From contig LSRY02000059.1 in the NCBI GenBank assembly GCA_001643675.2, positions 124,001-188,000 of the forward strand: 64,000 nt of DNA, in the 5' to 3' direction. Each line of letters begins with the position of its first letter. Within the stretch, counting starts at the first letter, position 1. The stretch comes from Monocercomonoides exilis PA203. Lineage: Eukaryota > Protista > Preaxostyla. Shown here one piece after another: positions 11,030-41,293 of the stretch. A model generated the notes under the pieces. It made no database searches. It was given only the letters and a program-made list of their open reading frames with translations, and was not told the DNA's origin. The position numbers were made by a program, and so were the translations under genes.

Positions 11030-14000
11030 TAATTAATCTTTTTTTCTTATTATAAAAACAATATTAATAAGAGGGAATTTTTTATTGAGATGATTTCAAA
11101 ATATTTTTTATACGTCAGTTGATACTCACATTATCAATATTTTTTAGGAGCAAAATTATTTTTGTTCTTTTTCAGTTTTGTTTTGCTAATGCCCTATTGT
11201 TGCGTTAAGACAATTCTGCTGTTCTTTTCTGCTTTTGCAACAATCAGCACACATGTTTCCACACACACAAATGAAGATTCAGAATGTGAAAACCATAAGA
11301 CCGTTGAATTTGACTTGATTGGTGATAGCCAAATTGCAAACTCCATAATGCACGCTTTCCCTTGTTCACATCCCTCATATTCCCACTTTCAACCGAACAC
11401 AAAACACACAGTTGCAGCAGAGTTTGTGATGGTCAATTCATCAGCTGAGCTGAAGTGGTTGAGCATTGTGCAGGTTTCAGGCAAGCGGGGAGTTGTTTGC
11501 ACAGACTCGTCAAGTGTGAGGGTGGTTGAGTGTGCGCTGAAGCTGGACAGAAGCAGCACAAAAAGCATGTTCTATGCATCCCGAGCAGCACTTGTGCTGA
11601 CAAACATCACCCTCTCATTTCCTTTCGCACACAGTGCAGCACAGCCTCTGATATCTTCACATCCACTCACACACACTGTGCAGCACAACAGCGGGAGAGT
11701 GGCTGTGGAGTCATCGCTCATTGCTTCAGTGTGTATTGGTGCTGAACCGTTTCTTTCTCCAATCCACGTGCCAGCCATCCATTTGGCAAGCACCGTGTTC
11801 ATCAATGTCACACAACCACATGCTTCATGTGCTGATGCCAAAAGAGATGGAGGGATGACAGAGGAGCAGCACACACTGATTGACAGCTGCTTGATGGATC
11901 GTGTGGAGAATGGATATGATGGTGGGATTGTGTGGGGGATGAGTGTTTGCAAAGGCAGCTTCACGGCTTGGAACTCCTCGTTTTGTCGCTCCACCAGAAC
12001 TGCCTGCCAACGAATTGAACATTCTGGCTCAGCCACAACCGATGTCAATGAATGTGCTTTTCATAATAATGAAGGTTCACAATATGGTGGAGCAATTTAC
12101 CATCAATCAACGGGAACATGCTCAATTCAAAACAGTGAATTCGATGACTGCCAAGCAAAAACAGCTGGTGGTGCGTGTAACATTATCTATTCATCAAAAG
12201 TTACCGTTGGAACCTGTGTATTTTCAAATTGTTCGGCGAATGAATGGGCTGGAACATTAAGGTTAAGCTTTATTAATCAACTGAACGTCAATCAATGCAA
12301 CACAACAAACAGTGCAGCACATTGGGCAGGAGGAACAGTTGAAGCAACAGAAATTAGAAATGGAAGTTCATTTTCGAACAACATCATAACGTCAGGCAAA
12401 GTAATTACACCAGATAACAATGAAACTGGAGGAGGGATATGGTGTTCAAATACGTTTGGCATGGTGTTTTCAGAGTGTCTGTTCAGATCGTGCTCATCGG
12501 AAAACAGTGTTGGTGGTGCAATGAGTTTCTCAACTCGAGAATATAGTTATCTTATCACAAAGCTCTCCTTCTGCTTCTTTGATGGGAATCAGGCCAGCAG
12601 CACTGGGGCTGACATCTATGCATCACAGGAGTGGAGCACGGTTCTTGTGGAAAGCAACATTGTGGAGTGTCGAACATCAACCACAGCACCAAACAGATTG
12701 TTTGTGGCTGGCAGCGACCGCAGCCACCTGATGAACAGGCTCCTCTCCCAGGCATTTGTCAGCAAGCACAACGGCTCAGACACCCCGCTCTGCGGCATCA
12801 CACTCTTTCCCTGCAGCACACTCGGCTTCTCGCTCACCCTCATCAATAGGTCTGCCCACCCGGTCTCCATCACTTTTGCTCCTGGCACTTATCCCGAGGC
12901 AGAGGCAGCTGTCGACTCGCTGGTGCTCCAAGTTGCTGGCCACAAGAGCTCCACAACCATCCTGCCAAAAGCCACCACTCGCTCTTTCGTCTCCCTCACC
13001 AGCGGACAGCTGACATTTGTCTCCTTCACTGTTGTCCACGGCTCTCCATCAGCACAGCCTGCCTCCCACCCCCTGTTTTCTGTCTCGAGCACAGCAGCTG
13101 CATGGATCAAAAACTGCCTCATCACTGCAGACACAGCACAGAACAATGTGTTTGGAGCACCCCTCATCACCATGGATGGAGGGGCATTGGCTGTCGAGAA
13201 CTGCGAGATAAACACAATCACACTCTCGGAGGCGCCTCTCATCCGCGCAGCAGTCACAGCCGAGCTGGCACTCACCAACATCACAATATCAGCGGTGCAA
13301 CGGGGTGTGGGGAGCGGTGCTGGAGCAGAGTGTGACATCGAGGATGGCGGGGCTGTGGAGATGAACAACGTGTCGCTGAGTGGGTGCACATGCTCGAAGG
13401 GGGATGGTGGGGGTGTTTGGGCGAGGCTGAGGAGTGGAGGCAGATTGCAGATGGGAGCTGTGTCAGCAGTGTCGTTTGAGGGCTGCACTGCTCCGAACGG
13501 GCAGGAGGCAAAGGGGAAGGGAGGTGGGGTGTTTGTTTCGGCTGAAGGTGGAGGATGTGCGATGGTGCTGAAGGAGATGGGCTTCTCGGGGTGTGCAGCG
13601 TGGAAGGGGAACAATGTGTTTGTGGAGGCGCCTGTGCTGCGGGTGGTTGTGAGCACCTCCTCGATGGGCTTCAGCAGGAGCGGGATGAGCGACGAGGATC
13701 TGATGGGATTCGAAGACGGGCATCGAGAAGACCCACTCCCGCTGGCACCCTTTCTGAAGGTGTTTTCACCCCCAGCGTTTGTTGGCGGAGCCAAGGGGAG
13801 AGACTTCAGCGCCTGCGGGTTTGCCGAGCACCCCTGTGTGTCCATCGGAAAGGCAGCTGGCCTGTGGTTTTCTGGCAGCAAAAGAAGCATCATCCTGCAC
13901 ACGGGGTTTGTGTGGAGAGAGGAGATCGAGCTGGGCGGCAACGAGTGGAGCATCCAGTGCGAGGAAAAAGGAGACGAGGTTGGTGTTGCACCCTCTGCAC

Positions 14001-17000
14001 CCCCTTCCCATCCTGCGCTCATCACAACCACACGCCCTGCACAGCTCATCAACGTGGTCTTTGCTCTGCCACAGACCCTTTCGCAGTCCACAACACACCT
14101 CCTGTGCTGCAAGGGTGCCACACTGACACTGACTTCGTGCGGAATCAAAACAGCTGGTGGGGTTCACTCGGTGGCGTTTGTGCCTCTTGCTGTGACAGAC
14201 GGGAAGATCGAAGCCACAAACCTTGTGTGCTCAGCAATGGCGCTGGCTGGCCAGCCACTGATGTCTGTTGCAGGTGCTGGGGCAGAGGGCGACATTGGCA
14301 AGCTGAGTGTCGAGTCTGTCAGCACAACTGCCGAGTGCGGGCTGCTCGAGGTTGCAAATGGCGGCTCCTTGCGGGTGTGGAACTCCACAGTGTCCTCGCC
14401 CACAGCACCCCTCGCATGCCCACTGCTCAGCTCTGCCTCTGCAAAGGCAATACTCCTCCAAAATAGCACCTTCGCCAACTTCGACAGAGCCAGCCGGAAT
14501 GGCGGATGCATCGAGTGCACACTGGCAGACGGATCGAGCCTGGCTGTTGCTGGGTGCACTCTGAGCGAGTGCTGCAGCAGAGGCGCAAATGGCGGAGGGA
14601 TCTGGGTCGAGATGAAGTCTGGAAGCCACTTCTCTGTGGAAGGCTCGACTGATGCTGATGCTGGTGGTGATGATGGTGATGGTAGAGTTGCAGGGTTTGA
14701 CACGTGTTCAGCATTGAAGAGCGCAGAGGGGGAGCACGGGTGTGGAGGAGGGGTGTATGTGGATGCAGAGGAGGGTGCAACCGACTTTGTGGTGGGGGAT
14801 GTGGTGTTCGCCAGCTGCACTGCCGAGAAAGGGTCCAGCCTGTTTGTCTGTGGATACGACCTGCTGGCGCTGATCAACGAGCACTCGCTCGGCGCACACA
14901 GGGAGGAGGCTGATCTGGCCAAGCTGGCTGGGTTCGAGAGGTGCGCCACAGACAGCTCGTTCTGCATCCCGCTGGTGGTGTATCTCTGGACCAACTTCAC
15001 AGCCGACGGCTTTGTGGACGGGGCTGGCGGAGGCGACTTCAGCCGGTGCGGGTTCAGCGAGGCGCCGTGCAGGACTGTCGACCACATTGTCTCCACCCGG
15101 TTCGCGCCCCTCCCCCAGCGCCCTTCCACAATCACCATCGCCTCAGGCTCCACAATCACCAAGGCACTCAACCTCCTTCCAGCTGCTGCCCCTGCTGCCC
15201 CGCAGCCGCTGCCATCCCTCACCATGCAAGGAGCAGCCCAGGCTGCCCGGCTCTCTGTGTTTGATCTCGCCCCAGCCGAGCAAGACGCCTTCCTCGCCTC
15301 GGCCATCACCCTCACCCTCCACTCCCTCGCCCTCTGCATCCCTGCTGCCCTGCGCCAGCCAAGAGCCTTCTTTTGCTCCTCATCCCGTGCGCTGTGCATC
15401 TCCGCCTGCTCGTTCGAGCTGAGAGAGGGGAGCATGCTGGCCTATTCGCTCATCCTCGTCGAGGAAGGGTCCTTCAGTGCGAGCCAGCTGGCCATCGGCA
15501 CAGACTCATCTGCAACCGCTGTCTCGTGCTTGCCACCCCTGGTTGTGATCCGCTCGTCGGGATCTGTGAGCCTGGCAGGCTGCTCGGTGGCGGGTGTGTC
15601 TCACTCCCAAGGCAACGGATCCTGGGCTGCTGCGGAGTGCCAAGGGCCGTCAGCAAGGCTCTGCATCGCCAACAGCACCGTGTGTGGATGCAGTGCAGCT
15701 GCAAGCGATGGAGCGGGTGGAGGGCTGCTGTGCAGTGCTGCTGGCGGAGCAACAGTCGAGATCAGCAACACCTCCTTCACCCTGTGCAGTGTTTCCAGCG
15801 AGGGCACACTCGCGAAGGGAGTTGGCGGAGGGGTGTTCCTCGACTGCGCTGGAGCAGCATCTGGCTTCCAGCTGAGCAACACATCGTTCGACCAGTGCAG
15901 TGCGTGGAAGGGCAAGAACCTGTTTGTCTGTGCCGACTCTCTCTCCCAGCTCGTCACCCGCACCTCCATGAACTTCACCTTCGCGATCGGCGTGGATGAG
16001 GCGCCAGACCTGGACGAGCTGAGCGGCATCGACAGGGCAAGTGCATCCCTTGTGCTCCCGCTGGTGCTCCTGCTGCGCTCCTTCGCTCGGCCCTGCGTTG
16101 TGGGGGGCGAGGACGGCGTGGATGCATCCCTCTGCGGATATCCCGACTATCCCTGCCAGACCATCCCGTATGCTGCCTCCTCCCGCTTTGGCCAGTCCCT
16201 CGCTGCCCTCCGCCTCCAGCCCCCTTTCTCCTTCAGAGACACCCTCTGCCTCTGCTCGCAGCCACTCGCCGTCGACTCTGCTGCTGCGGGCACACAGATC
16301 GACATCAGGGCTGATGGCGAAGGAGAGGGCGAGGCCTTGGTCGAAACAGGGATCGAAGTCGGCCTCTCGGGGATGTGCTTTGGCCTGCCTTCCTCCTTTG
16401 CGCCCCGCCCCCGAGCAGCCCTGTTCTGGTGCAGCGCAGCCACACTCACCTTCACCGCATGCACCACAGCTGCCCCGCCCTCTCCCCTCCAGTACTCCTT
16501 CGCTGTCGCCTCCAGTGGCACAGTGCTCCTCTGCCAGTTCGCCATGCACAGCACAGCCTTTGCTGCGTCCCCCGCATTCCTCCTCGAAGGCAGCAGTGCT
16601 GCTGGCTCGTTTGTCGAGCTGCACCTGCGCAGCACCACCACAAACGCGCCCAACGGGCTGATCCGCGCAGCATCCGGCGCCTCTCTGCGCGTGGAGAACT
16701 CGACCATCGCCGATGCCACCATGGACTCGAGCGAGGTCATCTGCTCCCCGCTCACCACCACCTTGGCGCTGAAGAACACCTCCTTCGCCAACATCACCAG
16801 GCTGCGTGGAAGCGGAGGGCTGGTGGTCGGGGCTGTGAGCGGGGGAAGGAAGTTCAGCTTCGCCAACTGCACCATGGAGAGGTGCAGCTGCATCGAGAGC
16901 GGCAGCACGCGCGGCGGCGGGGTTGTGGCCGAGGTGAAGAAAGGCGGAGAGTGGGTGTTCGAGAAGAGCACTGCAAGCGAGTGCACAGTCGACGGGCTGG

Positions 17001-20000
17001 CAGGGTGCGGAGGAGGGCTGTTCCTGCGCTTTGCGGTGGCCGATGTGCGGTACTCCATGAAGGGCATCGCCTTTGCAGCCAACGACGCCTGGCTCGGCAA
17101 AGACGTGTATCTCGTGTGCCCCGCCCCGCACGCTGCCCTCCACGCCATCTACTGGGAAGGCTCTGCCGCCGACACAGACCCCGCCACCACCAAGTGGGTC
17201 CACGACGACTCTGCGCCCCAGGGCGCCAACGTGTCCATCCTCTTCTACCTCTTCCCCCCCTCCGACGAGATCGTGTATGTGCAGAGCGGCACAGACCCCT
17301 TCCCGCAGTGCGGCAGCAAGGTGTATCCCTGCGCCACCATCCCCGTGGGTGTGGCTGCGCTGAGCGGCAACAGAACCATCGTCCACCTCACCAACCCAAA
17401 CACCCTCGCCAGCAGCATCGACCGCGACACACTCTCGCTCACCATCGAAGGAGAGCGCGGCGCACGCTCCCACCTCACCATCCAGCCAGGCGGGTGCTTT
17501 TCCCTCACCGCGGGAACAGCTGCAACCTCCTTCACCCTTTCCCAGCTCGTGCTCCTTCTTCCATGCTCCCCTCTCCAATCTGGCCTGTCTGTGCCTCCCC
17601 TCATCACTGCTGCCACTGGCCGCTTTTCGGTGGTCGACTGTCTGTTCGGCACGCAGGACGGAGCAGAAGACGGAGCAGAGGCATCCACATCCATGACTGT
17701 GGCGTCAGGCGAGGGAGGCACCATCCTCTTCGACTCCGTTGCCTTCTCCCACCTCGCCTTTGCGGGAGGAAGCCGGATTGCACACATGGGCAGCGGGAGT
17801 CTCACCATGGAGGGGTGCAACATCACGTCTGTCTCAGGCAGCGGAGGAGGGCTGGTTGCTGGAGGTGCGGGTGCAGCGCTGTCTCTGAAGGGGCTGAGGG
17901 TGCACACAACCCCAAGCACAGACGGGCACTTCCTCAAGGCCAGCTGCTCTGCCAAGGTGGAGATCGCAGACGGATGCGAGTTCGAGCAGTGCAGCTCGGC
18001 AGCGGGGGATGGCGGGTGTGTGTGGTGCCAGATGGATGGCGAGGGAGAATTGGGCATCCACAACTCCTCCATCAAGGCGTGCAGCGTCCCTGCCTCGAGT
18101 GGCAGAGGCGGTGGCATCTTCTTGCACCTGCTTGACCAGCCCAACAACAACAACAACAACAACAACTTCCAGCTGGCTGACCTGACCTTCTCAGCCAATG
18201 CAGCCCTGTGCGGGAGAGATGTGTTCCTGATGTGCACAGACCTGAACGAGAGCGTGAAGGCTGCGCGGTTTGTGTCTCTTGCTGGAGACGGAGCAGAGGG
18301 AGAGGCAGAGATGGAAGGCACAGACACACACAGGTTTGGCGATGTGCCGGTGGAGCTGCAGCTGTTTCTGAGGGTGCGGAAGGCTGGCGAAGTCGTTGTG
18401 TCTGACCAGGGATACGATGTGCTCGGGTGCGGGACACGCCAGCACCCTTGCTTTTCGTTCTGGAGAGGCCACGCAAATGCCGATGCATCCCTGCCCAGCA
18501 GGACAATGCTCGTCGCCAACTCCACCTTTGTGCAGGATGCCCTGGATGTCTCAGGCTTCCTGGTGCAGTCGTCCGACGACGCCTCATCCTGCACCATCTC
18601 TGTCCGCTCAGCCGTCTCTTCTTCCGCTGCCTCTCCTGCCTCCGCTGTCCTCGCCACAGCTGCAAAGACTGCCTTCCTCCGCATCCTCTTCGACCTTCCC
18701 TCTGCCTTCTCCTCTGGCCAATCTGTCTTCCTCTCCTCCTCTGCGCCTCATGGCGAGCTCTTCCTCACCAACATCACATTCTCTTCTGCCTCTGCTCGCT
18801 CCCTCAGCTATCTGCTCCTCAGTGCAGCCGGCCAGTCTGTGCACCTCGCCCGGTGTGTTGTCCAGTCTCTCGCCTTTCCCGACGCTCCGCTCCTGCTCAT
18901 GTGCACCTCCACCATCGCCCACTCCTCCTTCGCCAGCATATCTGCCCCGGCCTCTGCAGACGGAGGCGCACTCAAGGCGGTTCTCGCTGCAGAGCACACA
19001 CTCGCCACTGCCAACACCTCCTTCGCCCTCTGCTCCTGCTCCCCACACAGCGGAAGAGGTGGCGCCCTCTTCCTCGACTGCACCTCCTCACACACACCCA
19101 ACCCCTTTGTGCTTGGCCTGGCAACATCATTCACGCAGAACGCAGCGCCAGTCGGGAGGCATGTCTTCGTTGCCAGCCTCGACCTCAATGCCACCGTGAC
19201 CAACTCCGCCTTCGCCTTCGACTGCTCCCCCTTCGCCAGCGACCCAAACGCGTTTGTCGGCAGCGACACAGCCCACCCCGCCACTGATCTCTTCCGCTTC
19301 CTCCTACCGTATCAGGCCGACGCCATCTATCTGTCGGCTGCTGGATCCGACGTGAAGAGGTGCGGGAGCGAAGCCGATCCCTGCGAGAGCTTCTGGAAAG
19401 GGATGCAGCAGGTGGACAGCGCAGCAGCACACAAGACCATCTTCATCGACGGCCACACGCTCGTGCAGGACCCCTTCGACCTGTCCTCCTTCACCGTCCA
19501 GTCTGCCCCTGCCCTGTCTGAGGGCAGCCCTCGCCCGGCACTCAACGCCCGCAGCACCACAGACACCCGCGCTGCCCCGCTGTTCACAAACACCAGGCAG
19601 CTCCGCCTCGACTCCATCGCCATCTGCACCTCTGCCTCCTTCGCAAACGCGCTGCAGGCGGTGATCCTGAGCGAGGGCGGAGACCTCGTGCTCACCCGCT
19701 GCGCCTTCTGCTCCAACGCAACCTCCCACCAGCCAGGCGACTATTCCTTTGTGGTGTGCCGGGGCGGCACTGCCACAGCCGACAACCTCGAGATGAGCGA
19801 TGTGTGTGTGGTGCTGCCCGTGTTCCGGCTGGAAGGGAGCTGCGGATGCCTCGTGGCTGGCGCAGCAGTGCGCTCCGCGAGGATCGCCTCGGGGTGTGTG
19901 TTCTGCTTTGCCAGCGGCTCGGCCGCAAGGACGAACGGAGAGGCGCGCTTTGTCTGCACAAACTCCACCTTCGACACAGTCACACGGGAAGACGACGGGC

Positions 20001-23000
20001 CCTGCTGCGTGTCGGCCGAGCCGGGCAGTGCTGTTGCGGCCGAGATGAACAGCACAGTGCTCGAGTCGTGCAGGGCTGGCACGTCGGAGTGGGGCGGGGC
20101 GTGGCTGTGCTGGCTGAGCGGCGAGGGGCACATGCGGATGTCCCAGTGCCGCGTCGTGCAGTGTGCCTGCTCCACCCGCACCGGCAGAGGCGGCGGCGTG
20201 TGCCTCGCCTCCGACCTCTTCGGCTCCCTCGACTTCCTCTTCGCAAAGTGCGCCTTCGACGCCAACACCGCCTGGCGCGGCAGAGACATCTTCGTCCAGT
20301 GCCGCAACATCCCCTCCCAGATCAACGACACCCAGTTCCGCTTCGACCTCCAGCCCGACAAATACAACCCCGTCAACGCCATCTTCGGCGCCGACTCCCT
20401 CGCCCCCGACCCCATCGACCTCATGGACTTCATCACCGTGCTCCAGCTCAGCACCGTTGTCGTGGCCTCCGCGCAGCCCAGCCCCGGCGAAGACTCCCGC
20501 CAGTGCGGCACCCCAAAGCTGCCCTGCCGCACAGTGGGGTGCGCCCTGGCCCATGTGTACGGCGACCTCTTCCGCATGCTCGCTGTCGACGGCCAGGGCG
20601 TGGTGAACGGAGAGGCTGTGCTGGAGGAGCTGAGTGTGTGTGCGCTCGACAGGCTGAGTGCAGACATCCTGTTCGAGGGCGAGCTGGTGCAGACACGCGA
20701 CTGCCTCATCGAGGCTGTCTCTGCTGTGGCCATCGAGTGCATCTCCTTCATCCTCCCGCCCTCGCCTCCCATCACCCACCCGGCCCTGCTCCACATCCGC
20801 ACAGGCACACTCACCCTCACCAGATGCAATGTCGGTGCGCCTGCCCAGACACCCCCTCCCCGCATCCACACCTTCCTCTCAGTGGAGTCGGCTGCTTGCA
20901 CACTCCGCCAGGTGGCTGTGTGCAACCTCGCCTGCCATGCAATCGCTGCAGCTGCTGGCGGATCCCTCGTTCTGCACGAGGTCTGTGCTGCTGATGTTGT
21001 GTGCCAGAGCTGCGCCATTGCTGCCGACAGCGCAGAAGTCACCATCGCCTCCTCCCGCTTCACACAGATGATGGCTGACTCTCCCAACACATCCTCTGCT
21101 CATGCTGCTGGTGCTGCTGCCCTGTGCCTCTCCCGCTGCAACAGCCTCTGCGTGGCCAACTGCACCTTCGCTGGCTGCTCCAGCCCCTCTCCAACAGGCA
21201 TGTCTGTGCGTGTGCTGGACTCCGCAAACGCAGCAATCGACTGCTGCCTGTTCGACGGGCTCAGCCACGCCACACACAGACTCCCCCCAGGCAACACCTT
21301 TCACGAGGTGTGCAGCTGGAACGGATCGATGCTGCACCTGCAGCGCGGCTCAGCTGCCGTGAAGGACACAGCTTTCGCCAACAGCCCAGCTGGCGCACTC
21401 TCCTTGAGCAACGGAAGTGCGACTGTCGCCAAGTGCGAGTTCATGAGCAACAACCCATCCATCGAGGGCTATCCATCGCTGAGAAGAAACATCATCTGCT
21501 CTGATTCAGGATCACTGGATGTGATGAGTCTGAAAGGAGGTGATGGATTGAAGGATGGTTCATCATTGTGGATGTTGAATGATGGATGTGCATTTGATGG
21601 GATTGTTTCTGAGAGAGATTCATCATTCTTCATTCCTGTGTTGGAGAGTGTGGAAACAAAAGAAGAGGCAAATAGAATGAAGCTGACATTCAAAGGAATG
21701 CTTCTTGTTCCATGCAATCTGTCATTCTCAGTTGTGAAGAGGAAGGGAGATGAGAAAGAGATTGAACATTATGATTTTGATTCAAATGGATTCTTGTCAG
21801 AAAGAGAAGCAGAAGGAAGTGTGGCAAAAGATCTCATCAGTGGTTGTGGAAGTGAAATAGAAGTGAGTGTTTCAATTTTGTTTGGGAATTCAAATGCTCC
21901 TTCATTGACACAGCCATTCATTTTGAAGAATGCAAGTGAAGCAAAGGGAACTGGAAATGAAAGGATTGTTGAAGGTGGAAACAAAGAAATGTCCATATGG
22001 CCTTTAATAGTAATTATTGTGTGCATTGTTTGTGTAATACTGCTTGTAGTCATTGTTGTTTTGACTGTCCGATGGAAAAAGCAAAAGAGAAGAACAGAAG
22101 AATTGGAGGTGATTGTGGAAGACACAGTGAAGAAGGATCCAAAGGCGTTTGAGATGGTGACGATGGAGATGTCGCCTGAGGATCAGTGGCGAAGAGCTGA
22201 GAGGGAGGCTGAGAAGAAAAATGAAGAGAGGATAAAGAAGAGAGTGTATGAAAAAAGCTTGGGACACTCAGAGTCATCGGAGCATTTATTGAGTGAGAGT
22301 GGATCGACTGAATACATTCTGGGGAGAGACTCAGACAAGATTCCTCAATGGATGCTGGAGAAGGAAGAAGATGATGAAGAAACAAGAAAGCGAACACCCT
22401 CACCATCCGTTTCATCCACTTCAACCACAGGCACTTCAGACACAGATTCAACATTTGTTCGAGGGGAGGATCTGTGCCCCACTACTTCATCGATGTCAAA
22501 TCTTGTCGATGCAATGGCATGCTCATCCCCACATGAGAAATTGATTGTGGACTTGAGGGATTCTCTGTTCATGTTGCTTCATGGAAAGAATAAGACAAAG
22601 GAGATGGCAATAGGAACTCTGAAGGAGAGGGAGCAGACAGCTGCTCAGATTCTGTTTTGGGTGGCTAATCTTTCGCTCCATTCATTTGATGAAATGGACA
22701 ACCCTCTCTCATCTCTTTCCAATCTGAGTCCCCACCTTGTGCTATTCTCCGAGCACATGGTGATCTGCATTGTGATGCATTCTGACTTGTTGTCAGATGA
22801 TGATTCAGACTCGTCTTCCATCTCTTCGTCAACTGTTGTGACTTCAACCAGTAATGATGACAACGACTCACTACCTTCATCTGCCTTTGAAGATGAAGAT
22901 AGTTTCAAAAAAGAGTGTCTGAGGTGGAAGGCGCCAGAGCTGCTGATCAACAAGAAGATGGGCGCAACAAAGGAGTCGGTGGCATTCTCGGTCGGGATGA

Positions 23001-24336
23001 TGCTGTGGGAGTGCCTGACGCTCCAGATCCCGTTTGGTGATTATGAGGCAGAAATCGCTGGAGAAAAAATCAAAAATGGAGAGAGGCCGCCCATGCAGCC
23101 CATCGGCTCGTCTGCCTTCTCTGAGCTTGTCAAGGCCTGCCTGTCGGTGAACCCCGCCGACAGACAGACCCTCACCAGTCTCAAGCGCCTGCTCATCCAG
23201 CACTTCCCGCCTGGCGCTGCCATCCTCACCCTCTCCGATGCAGTCGACTACACCTGCTGCTCCGACAGACAGCAGCAACTCTCTGGCTCAGCCTCGTGCA
23301 GCTCCATCTCGGCCACTTTCATCTCGTAGAACACTGTTTTCCTCCTTCCCCCCCGATATCTTGTTCATCGGCGTGCAGGATTCGCTTCAACAAGGTGGAT
23401 GAGTGTTGTTGAATTCAGGGAAACAAATGATGAATTGGAACGAAACACCCAATTTGTTCCTTCCAAATACCATTTATGATTCTTGTTCTTTATTTTCCTT
23501 TTTGTTCTATCTTTTTGTTTGTTTGTTTGTGTTGTTGTTGTTGCACAAAATGCATCAGTGTTTGTGCATCTTTTTCTGTTTGTTCGCTTCTATCCCCACC
23601 GTTTTTGTTTTTGTGACACTTCACCTTTGCCATTTTCTGCTCTTCCCCATGATGCTCATCTTCTTTTGTGTTTGTCTTGTTTTTTTGTGTTTTTTCGAAT
23701 CCAAAAAATGAAGTGATTGTTGAAAACAGATAAACTCAATTCTTTGAACTTAAAAATGTCACATACCAGCAGCCATGCAGAGCTGCCCTCTTCGTCGTTC
23801 CACCTGAGAGAAAGAGGAAGAGACAAAACAAAATAATCTCAATTCCCCAGATTCATTCCCATTCGCTTTCCAAACAATTCCGAGCTGAAGGAAGAGCTGG
23901 ATGTGGTTGCTTCTGTGGAGCTGACGGAATTGGCTGGTGGGCTGGTGCCTGTGCCTCGCTGTCACTGGGCAGAAAATGTGTGAGTTGTTGTTGAAGGCGA
24001 GAAAGCACAATGGATGAAGACTCAAATTCCATCTCATCTCAAATGCCCAAGCCAGTTAAATTGGCTCTTTCTCATCGCTGTGAGCCGGAATCTGTCGCAT
24101 CCCAACGGTTTGAGACTCTCACTTCTCAGCAGTGCTCATTCACGTTCCTTCCTCAAATTGGCGCATTTCCTCCAGCTTTGCCAAACAACAAACATAAACC
24201 TTCACATCAACAAACAAAACACACACTTTGTCAAAAAGCTCGTCCAGCTTGGCCTCAACAAGAAATCTTGTTTTTGCATTTTTCAAAGCAAGCTGCTCTC
24301 GGACATTTGCTTTTAATGATGTAATAATAAGGATTA
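11030..24336 (+). repeat. Left arm of a ~13.3-kb inverted segmental duplication
   Basis: Colinear reverse-complement match to ~42405-55690, including ~150 bp upstream and ~1 kb downstream of the giant CDS. Identity decays at both edges, so the limits are approximate. Confidence 0.9.
11189..23329 (+). CDS. Giant (~4046 aa) Cys-rich beta-helix-repeat type I membrane protein with a C-terminal TKL-like pseudokinase (copy A)
   Basis: Single 12-kb ORF; the first ATG is 11189 (the track uses TTG at 11162). It has a hydrophobic signal-like N-terminus, Pmp-like GGA(I/V)/FxxC repeats, eight G.D...CG....PC modules, a TM helix at ~22004-22066 followed by RWKKQKRR, and a kinase C-lobe (RWKAPELL, AFSVGMMLWECLTLQIPF, GERP, CLSVNPADR). 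Confidence 0.9.
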   Translation: MPYCCVKTILLFFSAFATISTHVSTHTNEDSECENHKTVEFDLIGDSQIANSIMHAFPCSHPSYSHFQPNTKHTVAAEFVMVNSSAELKWLSIVQVSGKRGVVCTDSSSVRVVECALKLDRSSTKSMFYASRAALVLTNITLSFPFAHSAAQPLISSHPLTHTVQHNSGRVAVESSLIASVCIGAEPFLSPIHVPAIHLASTVFINVTQPHASCADAKRDGGMTEEQHTLIDSCLMDRVENGYDGGIVWGMSVCKGSFTAWNSSFCRSTRTACQRIEHSGSATTDVNECAFHNNEGSQYGGAIYHQSTGTCSIQNSEFDDCQAKTAGGACNIIYSSKVTVGTCVFSNCSANEWAGTLRLSFINQLNVNQCNTTNSAAHWAGGTVEATEIRNGSSFSNNIITSGKVITPDNNETGGGIWCSNTFGMVFSECLFRSCSSENSVGGAMSFSTREYSYLITKLSFCFFDGNQASSTGADIYASQEWSTVLVESNIVECRTSTTAPNRLFVAGSDRSHLMNRLLSQAFVSKHNGSDTPLCGITLFPCSTLGFSLTLINRSAHPVSITFAPGTYPEAEAAVDSLVLQVAGHKSSTTILPKATTRSFVSLTSGQLTFVSFTVVHGSPSAQPASHPLFSVSSTAAAWIKNCLITADTAQNNVFGAPLITMDGGALAVENCEINTITLSEAPLIRAAVTAELALTNITISAVQRGVGSGAGAECDIEDGGAVEMNNVSLSGCTCSKGDGGGVWARLRSGGRLQMGAVSAVSFEGCTAPNGQEAKGKGGGVFVSAEGGGCAMVLKEMGFSGCAAWKGNNVFVEAPVLRVVVSTSSMGFSRSGMSDEDLMGFEDGHREDPLPLAPFLKVFSPPAFVGGAKGRDFSACGFAEHPCVSIGKAAGLWFSGSKRSIILHTGFVWREEIELGGNEWSIQCEEKGDEVGVAPSAPPSHPALITTTRPAQLINVVFALPQTLSQSTTHLLCCKGATLTLTSCGIKTAGGVHSVAFVPLAVTDGKIEATNLVCSAMALAGQPLMSVAGAGAEGDIGKLSVESVSTTAECGLLEVANGGSLRVWNSTVSSPTAPLACPLLSSASAKAILLQNSTFANFDRASRNGGCIECTLADGSSLAVAGCTLSECCSRGANGGGIWVEMKSGSHFSVEGSTDADAGGDDGDGRVAGFDTCSALKSAEGEHGCGGGVYVDAEEGATDFVVGDVVFASCTAEKGSSLFVCGYDLLALINEHSLGAHREEADLAKLAGFERCATDSSFCIPLVVYLWTNFTADGFVDGAGGGDFSRCGFSEAPCRTVDHIVSTRFAPLPQRPSTITIASGSTITKALNLLPAAAPAAPQPLPSLTMQGAAQAARLSVFDLAPAEQDAFLASAITLTLHSLALCIPAALRQPRAFFCSSSRALCISACSFELREGSMLAYSLILVEEGSFSASQLAIGTDSSATAVSCLPPLVVIRSSGSVSLAGCSVAGVSHSQGNGSWAAAECQGPSARLCIANSTVCGCSAAASDGAGGGLLCSAAGGATVEISNTSFTLCSVSSEGTLAKGVGGGVFLDCAGAASGFQLSNTSFDQCSAWKGKNLFVCADSLSQLVTRTSMNFTFAIGVDEAPDLDELSGIDRASASLVLPLVLLLRSFARPCVVGGEDGVDASLCGYPDYPCQTIPYAASSRFGQSLAALRLQPPFSFRDTLCLCSQPLAVDSAAAGTQIDIRADGEGEGEALVETGIEVGLSGMCFGLPSSFAPRPRAALFWCSAATLTFTACTTAAPPSPLQYSFAVASSGTVLLCQFAMHSTAFAASPAFLLEGSSAAGSFVELHLRSTTTNAPNGLIRAASGASLRVENSTIADATMDSSEVICSPLTTTLALKNTSFANITRLRGSGGLVVGAVSGGRKFSFANCTMERCSCIESGSTRGGGVVAEVKKGGEWVFEKSTASECTVDGLAGCGGGLFLRFAVADVRYSMKGIAFAANDAWLGKDVYLVCPAPHAALHAIYWEGSAADTDPATTKWVHDDSAPQGANVSILFYLFPPSDEIVYVQSGTDPFPQCGSKVYPCATIPVGVAALSGNRTIVHLTNPNTLASSIDRDTLSLTIEGERGARSHLTIQPGGCFSLTAGTAATSFTLSQLVLLLPCSPLQSGLSVPPLITAATGRFSVVDCLFGTQDGAEDGAEASTSMTVASGEGGTILFDSVAFSHLAFAGGSRIAHMGSGSLTMEGCNITSVSGSGGGLVAGGAGAALSLKGLRVHTTPSTDGHFLKASCSAKVEIADGCEFEQCSSAAGDGGCVWCQMDGEGELGIHNSSIKACSVPASSGRGGGIFLHLLDQPNNNNNNNNFQLADLTFSANAALCGRDVFLMCTDLNESVKAARFVSLAGDGAEGEAEMEGTDTHRFGDVPVELQLFLRVRKAGEVVVSDQGYDVLGCGTRQHPCFSFWRGHANADASLPSRTMLVANSTFVQDALDVSGFLVQSSDDASSCTISVRSAVSSSAASPASAVLATAAKTAFLRILFDLPSAFSSGQSVFLSSSAPHGELFLTNITFSSASARSLSYLLLSAAGQSVHLARCVVQSLAFPDAPLLLMCTSTIAHSSFASISAPASADGGALKAVLAAEHTLATANTSFALCSCSPHSGRGGALFLDCTSSHTPNPFVLGLATSFTQNAAPVGRHVFVASLDLNATVTNSAFAFDCSPFASDPNAFVGSDTAHPATDLFRFLLPYQADAIYLSAAGSDVKRCGSEADPCESFWKGMQQVDSAAAHKTIFIDGHTLVQDPFDLSSFTVQSAPALSEGSPRPALNARSTTDTRAAPLFTNTRQLRLDSIAICTSASFANALQAVILSEGGDLVLTRCAFCSNATSHQPGDYSFVVCRGGTATADNLEMSDVCVVLPVFRLEGSCGCLVAGAAVRSARIASGCVFCFASGSAARTNGEARFVCTNSTFDTVTREDDGPCCVSAEPGSAVAAEMNSTVLESCRAGTSEWGGAWLCWLSGEGHMRMSQCRVVQCACSTRTGRGGGVCLASDLFGSLDFLFAKCAFDANTAWRGRDIFVQCRNIPSQINDTQFRFDLQPDKYNPVNAIFGADSLAPDPIDLMDFITVLQLSTVVVASAQPSPGEDSRQCGTPKLPCRTVGCALAHVYGDLFRMLAVDGQGVVNGEAVLEELSVCALDRLSADILFEGELVQTRDCLIEAVSAVAIECISFILPPSPPITHPALLHIRTGTLTLTRCNVGAPAQTPPPRIHTFLSVESAACTLRQVAVCNLACHAIAAAAGGSLVLHEVCAADVVCQSCAIAADSAEVTIASSRFTQMMADSPNTSSAHAAGAAALCLSRCNSLCVANCTFAGCSSPSPTGMSVRVLDSANAAIDCCLFDGLSHATHRLPPGNTFHEVCSWNGSMLHLQRGSAAVKDTAFANSPAGALSLSNGSATVAKCEFMSNNPSIEGYPSLRRNIICSDSGSLDVMSLKGGDGLKDGSSLWMLNDGCAFDGIVSERDSSFFIPVLESVETKEEANRMKLTFKGMLLVPCNLSFSVVKRKGDEKEIEHYDFDSNGFLSEREAEGSVAKDLISGCGSEIEVSVSILFGNSNAPSLTQPFILKNASEAKGTGNERIVEGGNKEMSIWPLIVIIVCIVCVILLVVIVVLTVRWKKQKRRTEELEVIVEDTVKKDPKAFEMVTMEMSPEDQWRRAEREAEKKNEERIKKRVYEKSLGHSESSEHLLSESGSTEYILGRDSDKIPQWMLEKEEDDEETRKRTPSPSVSSTSTTGTSDTDSTFVRGEDLCPTTSSMSNLVDAMACSSPHEKLIVDLRDSLFMLLHGKNKTKEMAIGTLKEREQTAAQILFWVANLSLHSFDEMDNPLSSLSNLSPHLVLFSEHMVICIVMHSDLLSDDDSDSSSISSSTVVTSTSNDDNDSLPSSAFEDEDSFKKECLRWKAPELLINKKMGATKESVAFSVGMMLWECLTLQIPFGDYEAEIAGEKIKNGERPPMQPIGSSAFSELVKACLSVNPADRQTLTSLKRLLIQHFPPGAAILTLSDAVDYTCCSDRQQQLSGSASCSSISATFIS

Positions 24337-24962
24337 TAGAGTTTTATATTGAAAAAAAAATGCATTTCCCGTTTAGAATACCTTTTACACAAGAAACCAA
24401 AATTTCTGTTTGCTCAATAATGCATATTACTATATTCGCTATACAAGATATGATTTCTTGAATCATTGACAACTTGTCAGATCTTACAATTCGTCTGAAA
24501 AAGATTTTTAAATATTGCTTAAATATTCAATGCAGATACTTCACCCATGTTTGCAATCCGAACATTTCTTTCGTACATAAATTCAAAAGATGATATTCAA
24601 CAGATATTAATTGCCACATCAACGCTGTACAATGAAAAATTATTGGAACAATAAATTCTTCAACACTTCATTAAATTTCAAGAAATTGAGCAAATAACTA
24701 TAAATTCACACGAGAAAAAGGGTCGTTTTGTGCATTCTACTATGCATTTTGCGCAATCAAATGTATCATTTAGAGTAATTGAATCATCTAAATGATTTTC
24801 ATCCATTCTCTTCTCGACAATCTTTACTGAAAATACGAAAGATTACACATTTAGAACATTTGTGTAAAACAAACATTTATCATAAAAAGAAAAAATATGT
24901 TTTCTAAAAGAGTGAATTGTCTCAACAATCATTTGATCTAACCCAACTTTAAATATGAACGG

Positions 24963-27900
24963 ATGGATTATGATAAAACGTCAAAATATAATTCGTATGA
25001 GGTTATGATATTAAATGCATATTATAAATTAACTTAAAAAGATATTTTGATACAAAGAACCACGTTTCCTCATGTTATTATGGAGAAATTGACTTCCTTT
25101 CATCATCAGAAAGTATAAAGCAGCTATTTTTGCTGCCTTTCGCAAGTCAATCTGTTACACTTTTTGTGCATAAAGTTGGAAACACAATAGTTCTTGAAGA
25201 TGCGGTGCAATTATCCGATTTTATTAGAATAGCTCATAAATGGAAGCATAAAAAAGAACAATCAGAGTCTTCAAATTCTTTGCATGGCAAACTAAAGATT
25301 AAAAAAAATACTGAAAACTCAACTACGCCTTGTGAAGCTCCGCAAACTCCAATTAACGAAATTCGAAATCATGCAACAAATGAAAGTACACAGAAAAATA
25401 ACATCAAGACACTTCTTCCAACTCCATCATCGTTTAAAACTATTCCTTCTTGTGTTCCAATACTACCACGTACTAAACCCACCACTTATCACCCTACTCC
25501 AGAAGTATTACCTTCATTCGCTCCTCCTCTTCGAGTACCAAAGCAAGTTAACCAAGAAAAACAGAGTTATAATTCCTCACCGGACATGAGAATAAAGTCA
25601 TGCCATACAAAAAAAATATTTTCATTTGAGGAAGATCTTGTGAAAATTCGTTCTGCAACATTGAGGAGTAACGTTGCATCATTATTGGACTGTCATGGAA
25701 TAAAAGTGATGCTAACTACAAATTCGTATGTCCCAAAGCAAAAAGAGAAGAAAACCAAAGAAAAAAAACGAAAATTGATTGAACTTCCACCGTCAGAACA
25801 GGTTCCCCGCGACGAGTCTGTTTCTTTGATTCGCCAGTCTTCTGTTCCTCCAACGACACACACTCTTCAGCAACTATCTCATTTTCTAGATCTTATTCTT
25901 CAGAATCCCGTTGCAACTTCAATGCTATTAAATTCACCTGTTAAACTGCATTCCTTGCCACAAAGGAATGCCACTATTCCCTCATCGTCAGAAGCTGTTG
26001 TGCCATCCGCAGTGTCGTCAACGCTCTCTCTCTTTTTGATGGGAGGCGCGCGTGTGATGGAGTGGCTAAAGGCACTTCAGCTGGAAGAAGGTCGAATGTT
26101 TTTTCTGGATAAAGAAAAAGGACGAAGAAACGTGGAGTTATACGATGTTGAGGAAGTTGTATCGTTTTTGAGAGATAAGCAGGATTCAGAAGATTGTGAA
26201 GATGATGAGGAAGAAGAAGAAGAGGAAGAGGAAGAAGAGGAGGAAGAGGAGGAAGAAGAAAGAAAAGACAGCGGAGAATCTGCAACGATAGATGAAGGAG
26301 AAAAGAATATTGAATGTAGAAGCAATTTTTGTGCAGGTGACAAAGGACACAGAGAATTTCTGCCAAAGTCATTGAAGCCAAGTTTCAGTCAAAAAGGAAA
26401 AACTGCAAAGCTTTATCAAATTGACGAAAAGGAAGAAGATGAAGAAGGAGAAATTGCAGATGAATCAACGTCATTCACGCAGCAACAATCAGTCACAGAA
26501 GATAGACACAAAAACGGAGACGAATCGCTTTTATCGACATCAGTTCTGTTTTATCTGTCGCTATCATCGTATCGAATTGCGCGTCGGCTGATGGAGTCCA
26601 CACAGGAACAAGACAGGGCAGCTGGCCAAGAGCTCATCCGCGGGTGCATCACAGCAATGGACACTGCAAAAAGGAACAGAAGTGCAGCGGAACAAGCAGC
26701 AGGAATCAGTCTGAGACACCCTTTTGAGGATCTCTTTCTGTCTCTCTGTCATTATTTGTACGCCCTCAGCTTTTTTCGCCCTTCGACTGCGTTTCCGTAT
26801 CAAATCATACCAGACCCTCTTGTTTTTCCATTCTTTTCAGCAGAATTGGGAACTTGCTCATCATCAGATAATTCATTGGCTTCTTCGCCAGCTCAATCTC
26901 ATCAGAGTCATTTCCTGTCGCATCAGACTCATCCTTCTGCAGTTGTCGATGGAACTTCTGTAACAATATTTCCTCCTTCCCCGTGGAGCAGCCAATCGCA
27001 GCCGCTGATGTCGAATTATTTGAACAGCAAATGCTCGTCATTGGATGTGCTTATGGATGTCGTGGAACAGTTGTCTTCTGCTTTGCAGTGTCTGCTGCAA
27101 CAGCACAAAACAGTCGAATCATCTTTCTTTCTCCAAACAGTTGACTCGCCACCATTTGCCTCTTTTTCCCAATCGCCAGAAGCTGCATCACTGCAGAATG
27201 TGACTGCATCTTTTCACAGCGTCTATTGCTTTCTCGCTGCTGTGTATTTTGATGCATTGTTCCGTGTGATATTTTTCATAGCATCTGAACTTATCGCTCA
27301 GAAAAGAGAGTTCGAAGCAATTCGTGTCCTGTTCCTTTTGTCATCGATGACCGAATCAAAACTGTCAAGTGAATTGGACAACATCCTTTTGGAGGTGCGA
27401 AATGGCTGCACACAAATTGATCCTTCGATACTTCTTGTCGACGAAGAAGACGAAGATTTAATCGGAAAAGAATCAAAAGTCGGAAGGCATCCAAATGAAA
27501 TTGCGTTGTGTGGAGTGTTCCCGCAGTGGATGGTTGTAAATGACAGCTGGCTAAACGTTGCGCCTGGCTTTGACATTTCTGACCCGTCGCATTGTCCCTC
27601 TGAAAACGGCATTCCTCTTTTTTACCCGAACAGAATTGTGTGTTCTTCTGCCTTACGAATTATGTACTCTCAATGTGCCTTTGCCCTTTCTCGTTCGACG
27701 CAAAGTGAAATGAAAGCAAAACACTCAACATTTTCTCCAATTTATCTTCCTTCTGTTCTTTTTGAGCATGTTTCCTTGTTTTCTCAGAGCAATGTTATCT
27801 CTTTGGAATATGAGTCTTCATCAGCATTGTCTTGTTATCCTATCTCTTCTTCTTCATCTTTCGTGTTTCCTATTTGTGATTTATCAACAGAGCAATTGCC

Positions 27901-30169
27901 TTCTTTAACATTCAATCCTCTGATCTCTTCTACTCCATCGACTTCATCTGCCTCGTCTTTTCCATCTTCTATTTTGAAAGATAGCAATTCTCGCATTTCG
28001 AATGAAGAGCAACATGAAGAAAATGCCTCTCATAAGTTTTATTCAATGCAAAAAATGAAGTTTGTGCAGTCTCCTTTGGATTGTCTTCAGTTGGCATATG
28101 CTTCGCTGATATCAGCTGCTTTGCCTCTTTCTCCTTCGCTTTCATCTCGCTTTTTGGCAGAAACATCAAACGCCTCCATAAACACACTTCTTACTCTATC
28201 TGACTCTGAAGACGACTCATCCTATCAACCTTCAGCAGATTCATTTGCTTCTAATTTATCTTCTTCTTCGTCTTCGTCTGCCTCTTCTGTTTCTTCTGCT
28301 TCTTCTACTTCTTCTTCTGCATCCATCATTCCTCAATCACTCCGCCACATTCTCCTTTCTTCTGCTGACATTCCTTCTCCTTCTTCTCCTTTCTCTTCGC
28401 CTCTTTCTCCAAACGATCCTCTTCCCATCCTGTTTCCCTCTGCTCCTTCCACTCAGCCAGAACCTGCTTATTCTTCTCTACCTTCTTCTTCGCCTCTCTT
28501 TTGCGTGTTTTCGATGCTCGGCCAGCTCGAAAACGAACGCGGTTGCCATTTTGCTGCTGAGATGCGCCACACAAAAGCCAAAGAGTCCTTTTCAACAGCC
28601 GCATACGCCTTTTATCTCTTGGGCGAAACTCGAAACTGTTCTGTTGTGCTGTCAAATATGTCGACAACAATTGCACTTCAAGCAGAAGAAAAGGAGATTG
28701 AACTAAACGGGCTGAAAACATGTTCCAAAGTTTCCCCGAATTTGTTATCTGAAACAGATGGCAGAGAAGAATTAAATTCGCTTGATGAAAAAACTGAAAG
28801 TTCTGCAAATTTTTCTTTGGTAGAAGCAGAATCATTGAAAGGGCAGCAATTGTTAGCCACTCGTCTCTCACAGGACGTCAATCTTTTGTGCCGTCTTTCA
28901 GTCGCACTGCAACTCAGAGCTCTCTTTCTGATGAAGCAGTCAACAGCGGAATGCAAATTTGCTTCAATAACAGCCATTCAAACAAATGATTCTTCTGAAG
29001 AGATACAAAGGAAAGATAACTCTCTTGGATTAAAAATAAATAGTTGTGAGTCAATTCAATCATCTGATATTTCAGCAACAAAGTCAGCGCAAAATTCACC
29101 TTCTCTTATTCCAACTTCAAAAAAGAATCTTTCAACTTCTCGTTCAGATTATGTTTGCATGTCTTCATCCATTTCATTTGTAACAAACATTGAAGACATG
29201 TTTTCTTCATCAAAAATGGCAGACAGACTGTCAGCGTATTTGATTCGATATGCTTCTTGCCTCCAAAAAGAAGATACAGCTGAATTGTGTCTGAATGTTG
29301 GAAGAGTGAAATCATATGAGAAGTCGTTTGTCGAATGGCTTTCGCTGATTGAAGGAGCTGCCGAGCTGAGCAAAGAAGGAGGCAACATTCTGAGAGAGGC
29401 TGTCTGCCATATGATGATTGGCGATGCTCTTCAGAACACAGGAGCCATGAAAGTTACTGTTGACGCTCATGCTACACACTTTAATGCATGCCCTTTTGCA
29501 TCTTTCTGCCCTTCTATTGCACAAAACATAGCAAAATACTCATTTGCACTGGCTCATTCGCTCCTTCATCTGAGCATTGCAGCAAAGTATTTCCGTTCTT
29601 TGTCTGAATATTCAAGGTTTGCCCATTCTCAAATCAGATACGCTAAAATTCTGTGGAGAATTGAACAAGGGCTAAGAAACAAATATACTTCAAATCTCTT
29701 CCCAAAGGAGATTGCAATTCCAAGTTCATTACAGCCGTTTTTCTTATCTTCTCAAACGGAGTTATGTTTGGATAAGTTTCAGTTCAATTCCGAAGAATGC
29801 ATTTCGATTGTTACTCAGTTAATAGCAATATTACTATCGTTGGGAGACACAAAAGAAAAGCTGACGCATTGCTTTGTTTCTCCTTCTTCTTGTCCCTCGG
29901 CCGAAGGTGAAAGGATAGATTTGTGGTATGAGCTTCTCCAAAAAGCGTTAAAAGAAGCTGTGCTTCTGTTCAACATCTCTTCCACAGTTCAACCGCGCTC
30001 GAGTAATTCTGCACATACTCTTCAAACAATAAAACAAATGTATCAAACAACATTGCAACTTTCCCCTCAAATTTTGTTGGATTCTTCAACGTCACTTGAA
30101 ACACTCCATCAAATCTTGCTCCAGTTGAATGTGATGATGGTAATTCTTCATTTGAATCCTTCTCCTTGA
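24963..30169 (+). CDS. EDRF1: EDRF1-like protein (erythroid differentiation-related factor 1 family); probable intron 25002-25057, start uncertain
   Basis: The frame upstream of the called ORF reads GEIDFLSSSESIKQLFLLPFASQSVTLFVHKVGNTIVLED, matching the EDRF1 motif DVVSDSENIKKLLKIPYSKSHVSMAVHRIGRTLLLDE as I recall it. VMEWLKALQLEEGRMFFLDKEKGRRNVELYDV matches LSFLKSNCTKEGHTYWLFK.SGSDIVKLYDL. The C-terminal half is helical/TPR-like. Confidence 0.7.
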
Positions 30170-40700: not shown

Positions 40701-41293
40701 TTTGCTTTTGAAAAATTTCTGTCTCAATTATTTCACCTTGCGACTGAGACGAAGAAGCCGAGAGTTGAGGGGGATGAGGTGATTGAGATGGAGATAAAAC
40801 AACATCTCCATTGATAGAACCTGATATTTCTGTTATTGTTTCTAAATCATGAGACGAAGACGAAGAGCTTTCAGAAGCAGATGATTGTGCTGTCGTGTCG
40901 TTTGTGTCATCAATATTCTTCGACTTTTGAAGCAATGGAGTCATAAGAGAATCATTGGCATTATCAAATTTCCGCCCACCAGATTGCATGAAATTAGATT
41001 TTGAAAACCCTGAAGGATTATGCAAAGACGATGATTCAGATTTACTTTGCGAGCTATTTGAAAGAAAAAATGTGTCAGGGGAAATATGCTGGGGGCTGAT
41101 GGAATGAATCAATCCTTCCTCTTGGCCACCATTTACAAAAACTTCGAAATATTCTTTTAAAAGATGTTTCAAATGTGCATACTTCAGAATAAACATAAAA
41201 TATAAAATCATAAAATTTGCTAAAGCATACATCAACGTAGTGGCGTTTCCATCTTTCCACCATCAGAAAATTAAGTTGATGGCTAAATTTCAT
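37729..41293 (-). CDS. SPX-domain SLC13/DASS-family low-affinity phosphate transporter (Pho87/Pho90/Pho91-like), 4 exons
   Basis: Exons 41293-41231, 41181-38729, 38562-38022 and 37938-37729 (GT-AG). SPX motifs MKFSHQL...W..HYVDYAHLKHLLK and INSEGIAKLIKKY. Transporter motifs ISNISSTVL, GNLAGMACPLASPQS, LPWNMILLVMGGGALG, FVSHTVAAIVLIP and SFPN. Confidence 0.92.

Follow-up and report, generated by a model that had tools for sequence, protein, structure and literature searches.

We analyzed a 64,000-nucleotide (nt) stretch of the genome of Monocercomonoides exilis PA203 (GCA_001643675.2, contig LSRY02000059.1, here C57; the window is C57:124001-188000). It contains two giant receptor-like genes, copies A and B, which share a near-identical ectodomain core and differ strongly in a short zone of the encoded N-terminal head. 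With a probability of roughly 60%, we think that gene conversion has homogenized the framework of these genes while a cassette in the head has kept older divergence. An earlier note on this DNA, made from the sequence alone, had correctly taken the organism to be a protist and had proposed that the head zone is a ligand-binding face under diversifying selection or patchwork gene conversion; our results favor the second of these processes. Positions without a contig prefix are those of the window, and feature coordinates are collected in Table 1.

A divergent island in the heads of copies A, B, and C

Between 12050 and 12560, copies A and B differ by 56 nt and 25 amino acids (aa) over 513 nt (10.9%), versus 167 nt and 85 aa over 8907 nt (1.9%) in the core (12561-21480). 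The clustering of differences described in the earlier note is therefore real, and we found all of its motif swaps (HNNEGSQY/HGLKNVEY, IYH/INH, NIIY/NIRY, SANEW/SVIDW, RLSFI/RFNEI, CSNT/CSHT, and REYS/REHS). It had placed the copy B patch at 54160-54670, which is the right region but offset by ~6 nt, since 12040-12560 in A corresponds to 54154-54674 in B. It had also spoken of two copies; both exist, but there is a third, copy C, outside the window. The heads of all three differ, with 175 variable sites per kb in 12040-12560 versus 29 per kb in the core. Structural Cys, Phe, and Gly residues, said to be untouched, are kept in part: within the patch 10 of 10 Cys are invariant among A, B, and C, but only 17 of 19 Gly and 9 of 12 Phe. 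Nor is the patch the sole divergent zone, because the 3′ part of the gene (21481-23160) has diverged even more.

Independent data confirm the copy A patch, which remained unchanged between 2016 and 2024. Over 12010-12541, copy A is matched with zero mismatches by Illumina contigs of DNA runs (2016 and 2022) and of RNA libraries that belong to a separate 2024 study, so the patch is no artifact of assembly or polishing. Its presence in RNA libraries is not proof of transcription, and contigs lose rare variants, so that minority forms of the patch may go unseen in the 2016, 2022, and 2024 data. Short-read contigs aligned to copy A at 11200-12000 and 12600-14000, outside the island, have letters typical of B or C at sites such as 11902, 11923, 11965, and 12688, and inside the island they are split into short A-specific pieces; de Bruijn contigs of these runs thus merge near-identical paralogs.

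The differences fall into short tracts. We labeled each variable site by the copy that is the odd one out and compared the number of runs of equal labels with that obtained by shuffling. The island has 33 runs versus 60.6 ± 4.4 expected, and adjacent variable sites number 32 versus 15.7 expected; the same clustering of runs is seen in the core, the N-terminus, and the 3′ zone. Sixteen A-only sites lie within 12040-12091, and across the A-only micro-tract at 12065-12080 outgroup paralogs resemble the state of B and C. Copy C has HGLKNVEY as in B, and NIIY, SANEW, and SFI as in A, and several differences among copies are swaps of whole codons (e.g., GTG to ACA). Local divergence in the A/B/C micro-tracts is 0.36-0.44, versus 0.38-0.43 in the full islands of other paralog pairs, a similarity to be expected of tracts left over from, or taken from, fully diverged cassettes. 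The sequence comparisons thus support a patchwork that would have arisen by exchange among copies: the run structure, the conflict between island and flank trees in the L016/L019/L028/L031 group, and the copied head tract in L062/L063 (both described below) all bear out that part of the earlier note.

Substitution rates are raised without a change in their ratio

By Nei-Gojobori counts in the three pairwise comparisons among A, B, and C, the patch (aa 296-470) has 0.22-0.31 synonymous substitutions per synonymous site (dS) and 0.087-0.094 nonsynonymous substitutions per nonsynonymous site (dN), with a dN/dS ratio (ω) of 0.30-0.41; the corresponding values in the core (aa 471-3440) are 0.034-0.041, 0.012-0.015, and 0.29-0.40. 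Both rates are 6- to 8-fold higher in the patch in all three comparisons (Fisher p < 1e-9), and the ratio of nonsynonymous to synonymous changes does not differ between patch and core (Fisher p 0.25-0.66). The view that patch changes are mainly nonsynonymous does not stand, because synonymous sites are raised just as much.

The same holds elsewhere in the family: island ω is 0.23-0.44 in 15 paralog pairs, and when we sought ω > 1 at the ten rung positions whose entropy is highest across the family (picked afterwards) in these 15 pairs, values ranged from 0.24 to 0.86 and never exceeded 1. The unchanged ω speaks against point changes having been driven by classical positive selection; the earlier note had named in advance, as refuting diversifying selection, a ratio in the patch no higher than in the rest of the gene, and ω in the patch equals that of the core. 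These results are an absence of evidence for selection and no proof of neutrality.

The island recurs at the same position across the family

A search of the 82.3-Mb, 101-contig assembly with the head domain yielded 125 or more matches (925 candidates), located in giant open frames that are 2,400-4,100 codons long. We sampled these heads with their flanks and defined close pairs as non-identical heads whose flanks are both at least 90% identical (n = 32), testing the zone homologous to residues 325-470 of copy A. In 30 of the 32 close pairs this zone is less alike than both flanks, and it is more alike in none (0/32); median nucleotide identity is 0.835 in the zone versus 0.954 in the flanks. 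Identity to the nearest neighbor is likewise 0.869 in the zone, versus 0.951-0.964 in adjacent windows of equal size. Across the family, the variable zone corresponds to aa ~298-474, or five or six rungs of the N-terminal beta-helix. Its limits vary by pair, starting at aa 298-413 and ending at 314-474, and all lie within the interval bounded by two conserved blocks; conversion tracts advancing from either side would leave such a pattern.

The sharpest case is an 18.3-kb duplicate (C67:2-18267 and C35:29742-48005) with 196 mismatches, 179 of which lie within one island of ~460 nt that is ~40% diverged. The edges of this island are sharp, it contains substitutions of all kinds and two in-frame indels of 3 nt each, and its GG, Cys, and Phe motifs are intact; the in-frame indels and kept motifs indicate old, selectively filtered sequence rather than fresh mutation. 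Most of the few other differences in this duplicate are gaps of one base in intergenic, AT-rich DNA. Contig C67 begins inside the duplicate, so 18.3 kb is the length seen.

Other pairs depart from this pattern in informative ways. The youngest duplicates (L012/13, L021/22, and L031/32) have identical islands. In L062/L063 (C36:261899-265582 and C60:204179-207862) the usual relation is reversed, with a head (aa 241-560 of copy A) that is 97-100% identical between flanks that are 86-88% identical, which shows that head tracts can also be copied. In the L016/L019/L028/L031 group, island and flanks group differently, so that their trees disagree.

Base composition follows the same boundaries in part. 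GC content at third codon positions (GC3) is 0.6-0.95 in homogenized parts versus 0.24-0.38 in the AT-rich island, both in the A/B/C trio and in the L016 and L019 subfamilies; L008/L009 lack this contrast. In the window, GC3 of the island is 0.24-0.34. Along gene A, GC3 and divergence are negatively correlated (Spearman rho −0.58, p 1e-8). The contrast may reflect GC-biased conversion in the core.

The head is a predicted beta-helix

We modeled residues 225-600 of copy A with AlphaFold2 from an alignment of 27 family heads. The model (predicted local distance difference test [pLDDT] 85, predicted template modeling score [pTM] 0.84) consists of regular 27-residue coils, each with three short strands, in agreement with the 27-aa rungs proposed from the sequence. 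Aligned with VIA-align, residues 1-303 of the model match beta-helix proteins with Z 20-23 and a root mean square deviation of ~3 Å over ~250 residues; among the matches are AlgG, a GH87 glucanase, tailspikes, the Vag8 autotransporter, and the PfbA adhesin. ESM Atlas matches have template modeling (TM) scores of 0.61-0.75, with a Preaxostyla cluster first, and the nearest named clusters are methanogen adhesin-like proteins with Chlam_PMP repeats (TM 0.61-0.69). Foldseek against the PDB gave weak matches only (E ≥ 0.011), all of them beta-helices. The predicted fold of the head is thus a right-handed parallel beta-helix of the pectate-lyase-like type; the VIA-align and Atlas comparisons revealed the fold but indicated no function.

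The idea that the variable residues stack on one face fits A, B, and C weakly and fails elsewhere. Among the three copies, the turn that precedes GG and the strand that follows it, which together make up 8 of 27 rung phases, hold 19 of the 34 variable residues that are in register (binomial p = 0.0013, with phases picked post hoc and sites that are not independent). In seven other paralog pairs, changes are spread across all non-structural rung phases. Both the single face and solvent exposure were judged here from rung register and strand pattern.

How the head could escape homogenization

We propose that gene conversion would keep neighboring, often inverted, paralogs near-identical across the greater part of the ectodomain, and that this homogenization would regularly fail, or be selected against, in the head zone, where older, more diverged sequence would stay. 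In A, B, and C the zone itself would have been largely homogenized, leaving a patchwork of tracts of 4-50 nt, each 36-44% diverged and with the odd copy changing from tract to tract, as remnants of exchange among three once-distinct cassettes. We infer that conversion of the flanks, not import of islands, is the main process, and likewise that the head would bind something and that diversity there would be useful. Escape from it may be due to selection for different heads, to a mechanical effect of divergence between conserved anchors, or to import from donors since lost.

Several points weigh against this reading. The identity of the C67/C35 flanks over 18 kb, intergenic DNA included, suggests a very recent duplication followed by island replacement rather than two separate flank conversions, and in L062/L063 it is the head tract itself that was copied. 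A passive barrier, in which divergence blocks recombination, cannot alone explain why the island occupies the same place across subfamilies. Relaxed constraint offers no explanation either, and we rejected it as the cause of the island: when 21 distant members of the family are compared, much of the ectodomain is conserved no better than this zone. The 32 close pairs come from a sample of 50 of ~900 heads, each with 1.5-kb flanks, and many of them are not independent; the ω values are pairwise counts, which are crude where changes come as multi-base tracts.

That the island keeps its place from one subfamily to another points to some force specific to this position. One candidate, which we hold to be possible but doubtful, is that the head is a ligand-binding recognition surface under diversifying selection that either drives amino acid change or removes the conversions that would homogenize the head. 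It would account for an island that recurs in one place across subfamilies (30 of 32 pairs), a regularity not expected from a neutral barrier, for the 19 of 34 in-register A/B/C changes in the turn before GG and the next strand with all Cys kept, and for a fold shared with adhesins and glycan-binding tailspikes. It is hard to reconcile with an ω that is the same in patch (0.30-0.41) and core, that is 0.23-0.44 across the 15 pairs and does not rise above 0.86 even in the most variable phases, with a dS raised as much as dN, and with the seven pairs whose changes spread over all non-structural phases, although pairwise dN/dS is a blunt instrument on old, recombining cassettes. In its strongest form, which we advance only tentatively, the head zone would be a selection-maintained recognition cassette and the family a germline-encoded repertoire of variable receptors on a beta-helix scaffold. 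M. exilis would then have hundreds of giant receptors with freely homogenized frameworks, nearly every gene with its own five-rung binding module, and with them a repertoire to distinguish bacteria, glycans, or host surfaces in the gut.

Recent import, in which short-tract conversion from diverged donor cassettes pastes islands or micro-tracts into young duplicates, seems to us decidedly unlikely. Its best evidence is the C67/C35 pair, in which flanks that are 100% identical, including intergenic sequence, surround the 40%-diverged island, together with the shared L062/L063 head tract (97-100% inside 86-88% flanks) and the whole-codon and multi-base replacements. What it lacks is a donor, for islands, micro-tracts, or patch, in the 82-Mb assembly. 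A genome-wide search with an 801-nt patch matched only A, B, and C, and the islands of L008 and L009, searched against the whole assembly, each matched only the other (68%). The exact core words of ten micro-tracts were absent from the family loci compared, and a genome search for second copies of A-only and C-only tracts (23-nt patterns, ≤3 mismatches) gave matches at control level only. The donor paralogs with exact patches that the earlier note had envisaged were not found in these searches.

Targeted hypermutation or programmed diversification, whether like that of diversity-generating retroelements (DGRs) or by somatic cassette assembly, is very improbable. Sharp island edges and a position fixed across the family speak for such a system, but the edges vary by pair, no donor arrays were found in the searches above, the substitution spectrum is not one-sided, and the indels are in frame with conserved motifs. 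Moreover, the youngest duplicates have identical islands, and the copy A patch is unchanged in the 2016 DNA, 2022 DNA, and 2024 RNA contigs. A DGR-like adenine bias was rejected from the base composition at identical versus differing sites of the C67/C35 island, where all substitution types occur.

An artifact of assembly or polishing in a repeated gene family is hardly credible: ten Pilon rounds on a Nanopore-based assembly (PMC8767320) could blur paralog differences in near-identical flanks, but polishing cannot create 460 nt of 40%-diverged homologous sequence, every version keeps the reading frame and the structural motifs, and the independent Illumina DNA and RNA contigs match the A-specific patch exactly.

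Gene architecture and family membership

Copy A is identical to database protein P0001 (4046 aa). It has a signal-like hydrophobic N-terminus, an ectodomain of ~3,600 residues built as a beta-helix (with sub-threshold matches to Pfam Beta_helix), one membrane span (~21990-22070, near residue 3610-3635), and a tail with a kinase remnant. A and B lie in inverted arms of ~13 kb (11067-24337 and 42405-55647) that are 18-20 kb apart.

Table 1. Features of copies A, B, and C; window positions unless a contig is given
Feature	Location	Strand	Basis or remark
Copy A, giant receptor-like gene	11162-23329	+	Open frame, 4055 aa; probable ATG at 11189 gives 4046 aa
Copy B, inverted tail-to-tail paralog of A	43400-55552 (gene 43400-55525)	−	Open frame, 4050 aa; core 98% identical to A
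Copy C, near-identical third copy	C57:64617-76796	−	Genome search; 4060-codon open frame outside the window, ~60 kb upstream of A
Predicted N-terminal, membrane-distal right-handed parallel beta-helix domain, copy A	11834-12745	+	aa ~225-528, 27-aa rungs; AlphaFold2, VIA-align, ESM Atlas
Variable zone (island), copy A	12040-12560	+	aa ~294-467, five or six rungs; variable-site density, dS
Variable zone (island), copy B	54154-54674	−	A and B coordinates sum to 66714
A-only micro-tract, NNEGSQ versus GLKNVE, in turn before first GGAI	12065-12080	+	13 of 16 bases differ from B and C
B-only micro-tract, RLSF/KVSF versus RFNE, in first strand of rung	12267-12274	+	Six B-only sites
C-only micro-tract, ITPDN versus NVSND, in inserted loop of rung 388	12403-12421	+	Ten C-only sites
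Three-state micro-tract, EYS/EHS/VHD	12540-12546	+	Three-copy comparison
GC-rich homogenized ectodomain core, copy A, with further beta-helix modules	12561-21480	+	98% identical among A, B, and C
Second divergent zone: ectodomain end, membrane span, cytosolic tail	21481-23160 (43570-45250 in copy B)	+ in A	dS 0.40-0.49, ω 0.12-0.14
Kinase-like C-lobe remnant, copy A	22904-23191	+	PF07714 profile positions 161-257 of 258 only

The tail of copy A matches PF07714 above threshold (35.2-39.6 bits; cut-off 23.1), and M. exilis MONOS_886, which carries PF07714/PF00069, is 93% identical to the flagged domain. An APE-like WKAPE motif is present, and a Ser/Asp-rich stretch stands at the place of the activation segment; by eye, we saw no Gly-rich loop, HRD, or DFG motif upstream of the C-lobe remnant in this tail, which is probably a pseudokinase. 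It is 85% identical to the tails of B and C, and equally to those of at least five other family genes. Since A, B, and C are not mutually closest in the tail, the genes are chimeric, with a recently homogenized ectodomain core.

The tyrosine kinases of M. exilis are its largest gene family, with 332 members, mostly of the tyrosine kinase-like (TKL) group (PMC6759080), and overlap its "unclassified repeats" (PMC8767320). Judged by the tail, copy A belongs to the family so counted. This family fills several percent of the genome, yet the genome papers list it only as tyrosine kinases; a text search of both (PMC6759080 and PMC8767320) found no mention of a beta-helix or a variable head, and a literature search in a limited collection found no description of this architecture, or of a variable head, in M. 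exilis.

The spacer between A and B holds two more long open frames, one of 1679 codons on the plus strand (25130-30169) and one of 860 codons on the minus strand (38653-41235).

Relation to known variable gene families

M. exilis is a gut protist and the first eukaryote known to lack mitochondria. By itself the difference between copies A and B is modest, and it represents a known kind of gene-family evolution in a new form. In clustered plant resistance and receptor-like genes (such as the "type I" RGC2 genes of lettuce) and in the major histocompatibility complex (MHC), exchange makes the framework uniform but leaves the recognition part diverse. The M. exilis genes resemble these in that the family is large and clustered and shows mosaic conversion tracts, that one segment (here of a solenoid) is the least alike when close paralogs are compared, and that structural residues are conserved. 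They differ in scaffold, which is a right-handed beta-helix instead of leucine-rich repeats or immunoglobulin domains and so lies outside the usual scaffolds of variable receptors, and in ω, which exceeds 1 at exposed recognition residues there but is 0.3-0.4, and never >1, here. An old island at a fixed position in freshly homogenized genes is a clean natural example of how conversion and the retention of diversity can partition a receptor gene. It also marks, on the basis of sequence variation, a segment of ~145 residues as the most likely determinant of receptor recognition, which makes head-swap binding experiments feasible.

Chlamydial Pmps are built of coils with GGA(I/L/V) and FxxN motifs (PMC11166332, PMC10715098), and Pmp-like proteins occur in Trichomonas (PMC6701047). 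The beta-helix coils of the M. exilis heads, in which a GGA(I/L/V)-type turn precedes an F-x-N-type motif, resemble those of these and of BspA-like proteins, and here too the surface family is large, polymorphic, and found in a microbe associated with a host. The likeness has limits: the copy A head has one GGAI along with GGAC, GGAM, GGTV, and GGGI, and its partner motif is F-x-N/D-C, with a conserved Cys, not FxxN. Chlam_PMP (PF02415) scored 19.3 bits at aa 298-314 of copy A, below the cut-off of 20.6, and matched one of 27 family heads at E ≤ 0.01; a Pfam scan of the family heads gave nothing above threshold. At the C-terminus, Pmps carry an autotransporter barrel, unlike the single membrane span and kinase remnant found here.

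The Entamoeba transmembrane kinases and receptor-like TKL kinases of other protists also combine a variable ectodomain, one membrane span, and a TKL-type tail with massive expansion. In the M. exilis genes, by contrast, the ectodomain consists of ~3,600 aa of beta-helix modules, and the C-lobe alone of the kinase is recognizable.

Finally, the inverted arms that carry A and B, ~98% identical, recall palindromes whose arms undergo gene conversion, such as those of the primate Y chromosome. Y palindromes are uniformly near-identical, whereas the A/B arms combine an island at a fixed position with a diverged tail. Close paralogs elsewhere in the family, like A and B, are often inverted neighbors 30-90 kb apart (C47:633833/665254, C58:1139076/1173521, C7:643569/730652, and C46:286825/333020), an arrangement that favors intrachromosomal conversion.

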